Below, in pieces: positions 14,587-15,394 of a DNA stretch of 64,000 nt (the first letter of the stretch is position 1; every line of letters starts with the position of its first letter). The notes under the pieces were generated by a model. It ran no database searches. It was not told the DNA's origin and saw only the letters and a list, made by a program, of their open reading frames with translations. The DNA comes from Pocillopora damicornis (taxonomy: Eukaryota), in contig NW_020844871.1 in NCBI RefSeq assembly GCF_003704095.1, positions 1 to 64,000 of the forward strand, written 5' to 3'. Made by a program: the position numbers and the translations under genes.

Positions 14587-15394
14587 ATGAGCATTTCTCA
14601 GGCTGTTCTGAACGGTGAAAAATATCAGCTTCGAAAAAGAACTGTGATTCTTGGTATCAGCCCTGGCAATCCGCATTATTACAAGATAGAAACCCTCGAA
14701 CGGCTGTTCGATTTAGCCGGAAGGACCTCGGAAAAGGTGAGTTCATTTTATACGATCCATCTGAGAGAATTACTTTTGGAGTATGTCTCGTCAACACGGA
14801 TGAATTAACTAAACGCCTCTCTAAGAATCATCCCTTTTTTTGCAGGTCTTTCTTTTTATTCCGGACAAAATATCCGAACACAACTATCGTGCTGTAGGTT
14901 CCAAGAACCCCGAGAAGTCCGCGCGTATCAAATGCAATCGCTTGCGAAACAAATGCAATGAAGCCATCCAAAGTAGCGGTCTTCGCGATGTGTCCCACAG
15001 CTTCATAAGGTGGACAGAGGAGGTGGAAAGCTGTCATGAATACAAAAAAGCGTTAGAGAACATCAAAAACCTGTACGAAGTGAATGATGACTTTCACAAC
15101 GACGTTAGACAATCTACCGTGGTGGCATTAAGATGTCTCAAAAACGGCCGTGAGAAGGGAGGTTCTGATGAGGAAAACAAATCAGCTGAGGCCGACAGTA
15201 ACGTAGACTTGGACGAAGGGGTGCAGTATCTTCTGAAAGAGCTGGCTTTCTTTTTAGCAGTACCGAACATTTATAAAGATTGCAATAATTTTGTTTTTGT
15301 GTATCATCGTCCCTGGCCAGTTTTAGAAAGGTTCTTTGGTGGGTTTTATGATGGTGTTGAAAAGCCATCTTTAGGTTTTGTCGTTTTTGAATGA
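14587..15394 (+). CDS. tRNA-dependent cyclodipeptide synthase (CDPS, NYH subfamily), 232 aa, 2 exons (14587-14736, 14846-15394)
   Basis: A phase-0 intron at 14737-14845 (GTGAGT...ttttttgcAG) joins ORFs 14542 and 14840. CDPS motifs: VILGISPGNPHY (catalytic S25, N28), LFIPD, YLLKEL (Y178, E182) and FVYH (Y203, H204), equivalent to AlbC S37/N40/Y178/E182/Y202/H203. Confidence 0.92.

Follow-up and report, generated by a model that had tools for sequence, protein, structure and literature searches.

Cyclodipeptide synthases (CDPSs) are mostly bacterial enzymes, with a few representatives in Cnidaria, Annelida, fungi, and ciliates. The first report of homologues in Nematostella, Platynereis, and Gibberella dates from 2010, and Nvec-CDPS2 of Nematostella vectensis, which makes cWL and cWF, is reported to have been shown active by Seguin et al. 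(2011), as later papers cite it. Coral and sea anemone sequences were placed in the NYH subfamily by Gondry et al. (2018), with entries from Acropora digitifera (XP_015767045), Orbicella faveolata (XP_020616991.1), and Exaiptasia (KXJ06569). Among the bacterial enzymes, YvmC (B. licheniformis, B. subtilis) and BtCDPS produce cyclo(Leu-Leu) in the pulcherrimin pathway, and their genes form a cluster with those of the cytochrome P450 CypX and a transporter. Here we describe a CDPS gene at positions 14587 to 15394 of a 64,000-nucleotide stretch from the coral Pocillopora damicornis (NCBI RefSeq assembly GCF_003704095.1, contig NW_020844871.1, positions 1 to 64,000 of the forward strand), which is referred to in the following as the window. 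An earlier reading of this DNA, made from the letters alone (the original prediction), had already called the gene a CDPS, and its description of the family as mostly bacterial and sporadic in eukaryotes agrees with the literature.

The gene alone adds nothing new, since animal CDPSs have been known since 2010-2011 and coral CDPSs since 2018; the enzyme family was already known from sea anemones and corals, and the two-exon gene model is already in RefSeq. What is new here is an intron site shared by six anthozoans, an alanine at position 184 and a loop that are both found across the clade, and a conserved trio of genes made up of a P450, the CDPS, and an ENT-like membrane protein. The conserved three-gene neighbourhood is the most interesting point of the locus. 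Taken together, the observations are very probably best explained by an intact two-exon anthozoan CDPS gene that is spliced and transcribed, would work by the family mechanism, and most likely goes back to an ancient acquisition of a bacterial-type enzyme.

The CDPS gene and its predicted enzyme

The original prediction joined two open reading frames (ORFs) of 88 and 184 amino acids into one CDPS by means of a phase-0 GT-AG intron of 109 nucleotides. Both ORFs are present (14542-14808 and 14840-15394), and the intron is found in the sequence and is spliced out in assembled RNA contigs (Table 1). It begins with GTGAGT, ends with a T-rich tract followed by TTGCAG, and contains an in-frame stop. 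The joined exons yield a product of 232 amino acids, which is identical, residue for residue, to the P. damicornis protein XP_027041519.1 (LOC113669646; P0092 in our set), with exon 1 giving residues 1-50 and exon 2 giving residues 51-232. The database record is named only "uncharacterized protein". The counterparts in P. verrucosa (XP_058958815.2, named "cyclo(L-leucyl-L-leucyl) synthase-like") and P. meandrina (A0AAU9X4A0, named "Cyclodipeptide synthase") differ at 3 of 232 residues. The G+C content of the stretch is about 40%, similar to that of its flanks.

The P. damicornis genome contains one intact CDPS gene and one frameshifted C-terminal fragment on another contig. The fragment (G000:C414:26446-26603, minus strand) consists of two overlapping matches in different frames, which cover residues 179-231 only at 69 to 76% identity, and it is probably a pseudogene fragment.

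The exons were searched separately, and full-length analyses used the public protein, being identical to exon 1 plus exon 2. Exon 2 alone exceeds the cut-offs of both CDPS profiles, Pfam PF16715 (E = 1.7e-16, 61 bits with a cut-off of 27, profile positions 52-217 of 220) and NCBIfam TIGR04539 (E = 3.5e-22, 79 bits with a cut-off of 45). Exon 1 alone is too short for significance (E = 0.087), yet it aligns to positions 16-46 of TIGR04539. The exon pieces match consecutive parts of one profile, which makes them colinear, and the intron coincides with the break between them. The full-length protein reaches 83.6 bits (PF16715) and 104.9 bits (TIGR04539) in a single stretch over positions 16-217, which is 22 to 26 bits above exon 2 alone. 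The Pfam search suggested in the original prediction speaks for a CDPS.

The AlphaFold model of the protein, based on 24 sequences, has a mean predicted local distance difference test (pLDDT) score of 88.3 and a predicted template-modelling (TM) score of 0.86, and is poorly defined only at residues 153-167. The model folds into a Rossmann-type structure like that of class-Ic aminoacyl-tRNA synthetases and is superposable on solved CDPSs. The 50 Foldseek matches in the PDB with E <= 0.001 all belong to CDPSs, the top ones being BtCDPS (PDB ID 7azu and 6ztu) and YvmC (PDB ID 3oqi and others) with TM scores of 0.74 to 0.75. Searching the PDB sequences with a profile of 14 anthozoan proteins results in BtCDPS (2.6e-14) and YvmC (3.3e-12) with end-to-end alignments, where the Ser of GISP, the Y..ELxFF motif, and YHRPW are all in register. 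The ATP-binding motifs HIGH and KMSKS, which mark true synthetases and which CDPSs lack, have no counterpart in the protein.

Residue counting confirms the numbering of the catalytic set given in the original prediction, with GISPGN at 23-28 (S25, N28), YLLKE at 178-182 (Y178, E182), and VYHRPW at 202-207 (Y203, H204). S25 lies in the GxSPxN motif and corresponds to the catalytic Ser37 of AlbC, Y178, E182, and Y203 correspond to AlbC Tyr178, Glu182, and Tyr202, and the NYH residues of AlbC (Asn40, Tyr202, His203) are represented by N28, Y203, and H204. All six residues are conserved in 13 of 14 aligned relatives, one having a Tyr at the H204 position, and the five catalytic residues common to all CDPSs are invariant in all 14, as nearly are both pockets. 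Judged from the sequence and the structure model, the stretch encodes a CDPS of the NYH subfamily with a CDPS fold and a predicted enzyme activity.

By analogy with the family mechanism of AlbC, YvmC, and Rv2275, the enzyme would use two aminoacyl-tRNAs, one after the other. Pocket P1 would bind the first aminoacyl group, which is then transferred to Ser25, and the second would be bound in pocket P2 and yield a dipeptidyl-enzyme, after which Tyr178, Glu182, and Tyr203 would aid the cyclisation to a 2,5-diketopiperazine. The pocket positions were taken from Gondry et al. (2018) in AlbC numbering (P1: 33, 35, 65, 67, 119, 185, 186, and 200; P2: 152, 155, 156, 159, 204, 206, and 207). The resulting motifs are IGFPWFFF for P1 and SVACRWP for P2, which fit the anthozoan pattern of xGFPWF(F/L)(F/V) and S(A/M/V)ACRWP. 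As a check of the mapping, the published motif of Exaiptasia KXJ06569 was recovered from the protein P0042.

Two peculiarities had been pointed out in the original prediction, the replacement of the conserved Pro after YxxxE and an acidic insertion preceding this helix. The first observation holds, residue 184 being an Ala, but it is not peculiar to this gene. The motif reads Y..KELAF in nearly all of the approximately 84 anthozoan relatives covering the site, and Ala184 is invariant in an alignment including eight Polyangiaceae-like bacterial proteins (YLLKEFAF, also with GxSPGN); an Embleya CDPS-like ORF has an Ile at this position. CDPSs frequently have a Pro at this place, two positions behind the catalytic Glu, but it does not define them. 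Since Ala184 occurs in the anthozoan relatives and in Polyangiaceae-like proteins that are named CDPS by NCBI, the Pro is not required for membership of the family. The acidic stretch is likewise present, at residues 155-168, but it is a length-variable loop rather than an insertion. It lies between the helix with the P2 residues and the Y178/E182 helix, which makes it the alpha6-alpha7 loop of AlbC, a loop that has been tied to the second tRNA. The loop is disordered in the AlphaFold model (153-167), and in the alignment of 14 anthozoans its length differs by about six residues. It reaches about 60 residues in P0075 (L021:10001-10693), a distant relative with 38% identity that carries an insertion of about that length in the loop, and no recognisable P450 or transporter neighbours are found within 10 kb at that locus.

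The stretch is contained in 18 public runs from six studies, nine of which are recorded as RNA. Contigs of four runs were aligned to positions 13000-18500, namely X1, X5, and X12 (poly(A) RNA from three studies) and X15 (DNA-like). The junction 14736|14846, which skips 109 bases between GT and AG, occurs in contigs of X1, X5, and X12, whereas the X15 contigs read through the intron and lack it. Thus, the splice site for which the original prediction had proposed RNA sequencing as a check is supported by the contigs of all three poly(A) RNA studies. The junction is also spanned without interruption by P0001, a Logan transcript protein with 99% identity. The RNA contigs end at 15610 (X1) and at 15629 (X5, followed by sequencing adapter), and one extends to 16256. 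The transcribed 5' leader holds two short upstream ORFs at 14471-14545 (24 codons) and 14496-14618 (40 codons), the latter running over the CDPS start codon out of frame, and these may exert translational control on the CDPS gene.

The X12 contig is a diverged allele or comes from a sister lineage. Its nine listed coding differences, to which two further differences that were not itemised would have to be added, comprise 7 silent and 2 replacement changes over 146 silent and 550 replacement sites. This amounts to a roughly 13-fold excess of silent over replacement changes per site, a pattern indicating a gene under purifying selection.

In X15, the final 180 bases of the CDPS coding sequence (15208-15398) show an approximately fourfold rise in sequencing depth, and the X15 contig at this place continues into unlike sequence on both sides. 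Many fragment proteins of 122 to 123 amino acids also cover the C-terminal part of the CDPS (e.g., P0058, P0059, and P0095). Related Pocillopora genomes may contain extra partial CDPS copies.

Anthozoan relatives, intron age, and origin

The word search with exon 2 gave 90 proteins. All those with a species name (about ten, plus those named via clusters) are anthozoan, belonging to Oculina, Desmophyllum, Montipora, Actinia, Exaiptasia, Dendronephthya, and Pocillopora species, and the proteins without a species name show the same family motifs. The intron is located at the same codon boundary, in phase 0, in Oculina (608 nt), Desmophyllum (126 nt), Exaiptasia (66 nt), Actinia (149 nt), and Dendronephthya (206 and 89 nt). 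It separates codons for ...(D/E)(K/Q) from those for (V/I/A)(L/F/M)(L/M), which precede an (F/I)(I/M/L)(P/A/V)DK motif. Counting Pocillopora, the shared intron covers six anthozoans, which is every species whose DNA was fetched. As Dendronephthya is an octocoral with the same intron, the intron is older than the split of the two anthozoan classes, Hexacorallia and Octocorallia, which took place more than 500 million years ago. The shared position indicates a long residence in the animal genome and provides a minimum age for the gene, in line with the original prediction, which had read the presence of an intron in this way.

In Desmophyllum pertusum, about seven CDPS genes of 236 amino acids are arranged in tandem on one strand, about 4.7 kb apart (MU826828.1, 3082578-3112891; the overlapping loci L003 and L004). 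No P450 or transporter match is found in the 30 kb analysed.

The bacterial sequences were sampled by a pattern scan of genome contigs, giving one locus (L008), and by a word search with the L008 protein, giving 10 close relatives. These Polyangiaceae-like proteins are 24 to 29% identical to the coral CDPS, and the Embleya, Streptomyces, and Bacillus plasmid genes are 23 to 27% identical. The Polyangiaceae-like type occurs sporadically, a CDPS of this kind having been found in 1 of 61 related genomes searched.

A maximum likelihood tree was calculated for 26 sequences, with the three plasmid-borne CDPSs of Bacillus, Streptomyces, and Embleya as outgroups. The anthozoans form one clade (87/97), and its subdivision into octocoral, sea anemones, complex corals, and robust corals agrees with taxonomy. 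The anthozoan and Polyangiaceae-like clades are grouped together against the Bacillus, Streptomyces, and Embleya CDPSs (100/98). Within this small tree, the Polyangiaceae-like clade, sharing Ala184, appears as the nearest bacterial relative of the anthozoan genes. Based on these sequences, the most likely history is a single ancient acquisition of a bacterial-type CDPS before the split between Hexacorallia and Octocorallia, followed by intron gain and vertical descent. The original prediction had considered an ancient horizontal transfer possible; this is plausible and the tree fits one old acquisition, but with 26 sequences it is a weak test.

The gene neighbourhood and alternative explanations

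The CDPS gene is flanked by a divergent P450 gene and by a downstream gene for a membrane protein that resembles, in diverged form, equilibrative nucleoside transporters (ENT-like; Table 1). The P450 pieces match the Pfam p450 family with E-values of 8e-14 and 2.2e-15, and upstream of them the gene contains an N gap (11680-11876). The ENT-like gene is covered by RNA contigs. One X12 contig shows a GT..AG joint skipping 118 bases (16760-16879), which would cost the ENT-like ORF its first 37 codons. Actinia and Dendronephthya have these codons conserved, and another X12 contig is unspliced there.

The order P450 (minus strand), CDPS (plus strand), and ENT-like (plus strand) is kept in Pocillopora, Oculina (L018), Actinia (L007), and Dendronephthya (L006). 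The ENT-like protein is 67% identical to the product of the gene after the Actinia CDPS and 64% identical to that after the Dendronephthya CDPS. The P450 exons are 56 to 74% identical to those adjoining the CDPS in Exaiptasia, Actinia, and Dendronephthya, and orthologous exons are also present in Oculina. Parts of the trio are found in Exaiptasia (P450-CDPS; L005) and in a contig of the European Nucleotide Archive (CDPS-ENT; L019). Dendronephthya has three CDPS copies. A degraded ENT-like copy in three pieces with different frames follows the second of them (L006:8453-9503); the transporter was therefore part of the duplicated unit. No description of the trio was found in the literature searched.

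We tentatively suggest, with slightly less than even confidence, that a three-gene diketopiperazine pathway encoded by the animal is built around the CDPS. It would have been kept as a unit since before the hexacoral/octocoral split and would serve to produce and transport an oxidised cyclodipeptide of the host. In such a pathway, the P450 would oxidise the cyclodipeptide and the ENT-like protein would move the cyclodipeptide or its product; from the conserved gene order, we hold this division of labour to be about evenly balanced between right and wrong. If the suggestion is true, the cluster has been carried unchanged for several hundred million years and offers a handle on which coral diketopiperazines are made by the host and which by microbes. 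After the terpene clusters of octocorals, it would also be the second animal example of clustered secondary metabolism.

Bacterial CDPS genes can have comparable neighbours. A Bacillus cereus plasmid carries a CDPS, a CDPS-associated P450, two MarR genes, and a major facilitator superfamily (MFS) transporter, and a Streptomyces plasmid carries a P450, a methyltransferase, a CDPS, and another P450. A joint transfer of P450 and CDPS as a bacterial operon is not supported, because the coral P450 has no specific likeness to the CDPS-associated P450 family TIGR04538. If the three genes work together, they were probably brought together in the animal and not acquired as a complete set.

A rather unlikely, though serious, alternative is that the CDPS is active alone and that the P450 and ENT-like genes are its neighbours by descent, with no part in its chemistry. 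This would fit the lack of a specific match between the coral P450 and the CDPS-associated P450s, the multiplication of the CDPS in tandem without a P450 in Desmophyllum and Dendronephthya, and the Exaiptasia locus, where no ENT-like gene is found within 8.5 kb downstream; furthermore, the RNA contigs give no co-expression readout for the trio. However, two corals (one of them a robust coral), a sea anemone, and an octocoral share the order and orientation of the trio within about 9 kb, and such microsynteny is unusual over that distance. In addition, the duplicated unit in Dendronephthya took along an ENT-like copy, and bacterial CDPS clusters pair the same three functions.

Several further points weigh against the proposed pathway and the ancient, functional CDPS at its centre. 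The coral P450 scores 15.5 bits against TIGR04538, the cut-off being 500. The RNA evidence consists of assembled contigs, which inform about presence and structure, not about level or exact ends. The tree comprises 26 sequences with three long-branched outgroups, and its bacterial clade was picked via motifs shared with the query, which introduces a similarity bias. Concerning the enzyme itself, Ala184 replaces the Pro of YvmC, BtCDPS, and the Streptomyces sequences, and the loop at the place of the AlbC second-tRNA loop has 6 acidic and 2 basic residues out of 16. The Acropora, Orbicella, and Exaiptasia members of the coral group are listed without activity in the table of Gondry et al. (2018), and none of the characterised specificity groups in that table (cWX, cLL, cPX, and others) has both pocket motifs. 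Enzymes with similar P1 motifs load Pro (CDPS 82 and 83), Phe (CDPS 84), Leu (CDPS 77), or Trp (Nvec2) (Gondry et al., 2018), so the product is not predictable. The mapping of P1 and P2 proposed in the original prediction therefore succeeded in assigning motifs, which match the uncharacterised coral group, but did not lead to substrates. As no characterised enzyme has both motifs, the RefSeq label "cyclo(L-leucyl-L-leucyl) synthase-like" is not a product prediction either.

Some of these points would also suit a catalytically dead or repurposed CDPS relic making no cyclodipeptide, for example, owing to Ala184 or the acidic loop, an explanation that we consider improbable. Besides the missing activity entries of the coral orthologue group and the Ala in place of the Pro of several bacterial CDPSs, it could draw on several actinobacterial NYH CDPSs with similar motifs, which were inactive in E. 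coli (Gondry et al., 2018). A relic is hard to reconcile with the invariance of the five universal catalytic residues in 14 of 14 relatives and the nearly invariant pockets, even with the one Tyr at the H204 position, with the excess of silent changes in the X12 variant, and with a gene that is transcribed and spliced. Moreover, bacterial proteins with the NCBI name tRNA-dependent CDPS have Ala184 as well, and the related Nematostella enzyme is reported to be active (Seguin et al., 2011).

Bacterial or symbiont DNA misplaced in the coral assembly, which the overwhelmingly bacterial occurrence of CDPSs could suggest, has almost no probability left and is rejected, being refuted by splicing and synteny: the poly(A) RNA lacks a GT-AG intron of the spliceosomal type, an AATAAA precedes the transcript end, the G+C content resembles that of the flanks, the gene lies among animal genes with introns, five other anthozoan assemblies contain the gene with the same intron and neighbours, and the bacterial relatives are intronless and only 25 to 29% identical.

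Table 1. Coordinates of the CDPS gene and its two neighbours in the window
Feature	Position	Strand	Remarks
5' untranslated region (transcript start not mapped)	14373..14586	+	RNA contigs begin at 14437 (X1) and 14373 (X12)
CDPS coding exon 1	14587..14736	+	150 nt, 50 codons, ATG at 14587; holds catalytic Ser25 and Asn28 in GISPGN
CDPS intron	14737..14845	+	109 nt, GT-AG, phase 0; RNA contig joints; same position in five other anthozoans
CDPS coding exon 2	14846..15394	+	549 nt, 182 codons plus TGA; Y178, E182, A184, Y203, H204, and variable acidic loop 155-168
3' untranslated region	15395..15629	+	RNA contig ends; AATAAA at 15612-15617
Cytochrome P450 gene, divergent from CDPS	9211..11370	-	Exon-bearing ORF pieces 9211-9528 (heme loop), 10008-10367, and 10639-11370
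ENT-like membrane protein, downstream of CDPS	16767..18083	+	Single ORF, 438 amino acids; PF01733, E = 5.2e-12 (weak nucleoside-transporter match)

Two other ORFs of the window may be mentioned. The ORF end at 7983-8090 (plus strand), which adjoins an N gap, resembles the C-terminal end of histone H2B; Pfam gave no match on its 36 residues. The ORF at 57247-58425 (plus strand) has 392 amino acids, with ankyrin repeats at its start (Pfam Ank_2, 4.3e-18).

Comparison with described CDPSs

The coral and sea anemone entries of Gondry et al. (2018) belong to the same subfamily as the window CDPS. Their pocket motifs are MGFPWFLF/SMACRWP (Acropora), MGFPWFLV/SAACRWP (Orbicella), and VGFPWFLF/SAACRWP (Exaiptasia), and the window CDPS is separated from the coral entries by one or two conservative pocket changes. 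Nvec-CDPS2, the only characterised animal CDPS, is also an anthozoan NYH enzyme, with a P1 pocket of the xGFPW type and a P2 pocket ending in RWP. Its pockets (LGFPWYIF/ERVKRWP) differ from those of the window CDPS at 3 of 8 P1 positions and 4 of 7 P2 positions. Nvec-CDPS2 is not among the 90 word-search matches of exon 2, suggesting that it is probably a more distant paralogue, and the comparison with it is one of pocket motifs alone.

The Polyangiaceae-like clade (P0138-P0147; locus L008) shares GxSPGN and YLLKExAF, including Ala184, with the coral CDPS. Its members differ in having 24 to 29% identity, a length of 276 to 310 amino acids, and YHQDF instead of YHRPW after the second Tyr. At L008:3632-4837, the CDPS is followed not by a P450 but by a 2-oxoglutarate/Fe(II) oxygenase, with stop and start codons overlapping.

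YvmC and BtCDPS are the closest solved structures, with TM scores of 0.74 to 0.75 at about 21% identity. The likeness includes the catalytic Ser, Tyr, Glu, and Tyr-His, the YHRPW motif, and a parallel neighbourhood of CDPS, P450, and transporter. In contrast to the coral gene, the two enzymes are bacterial and intronless, and have a Pro at position 184, a Phe in SPFN, and other pockets. The coral P450 is also of a different family from CypX, as is the coral transporter from the MFS exporter. By analogy, the proposed coral pathway would follow the logic of bacterial clusters such as that of pulcherrimin, but with animal-type partner genes.

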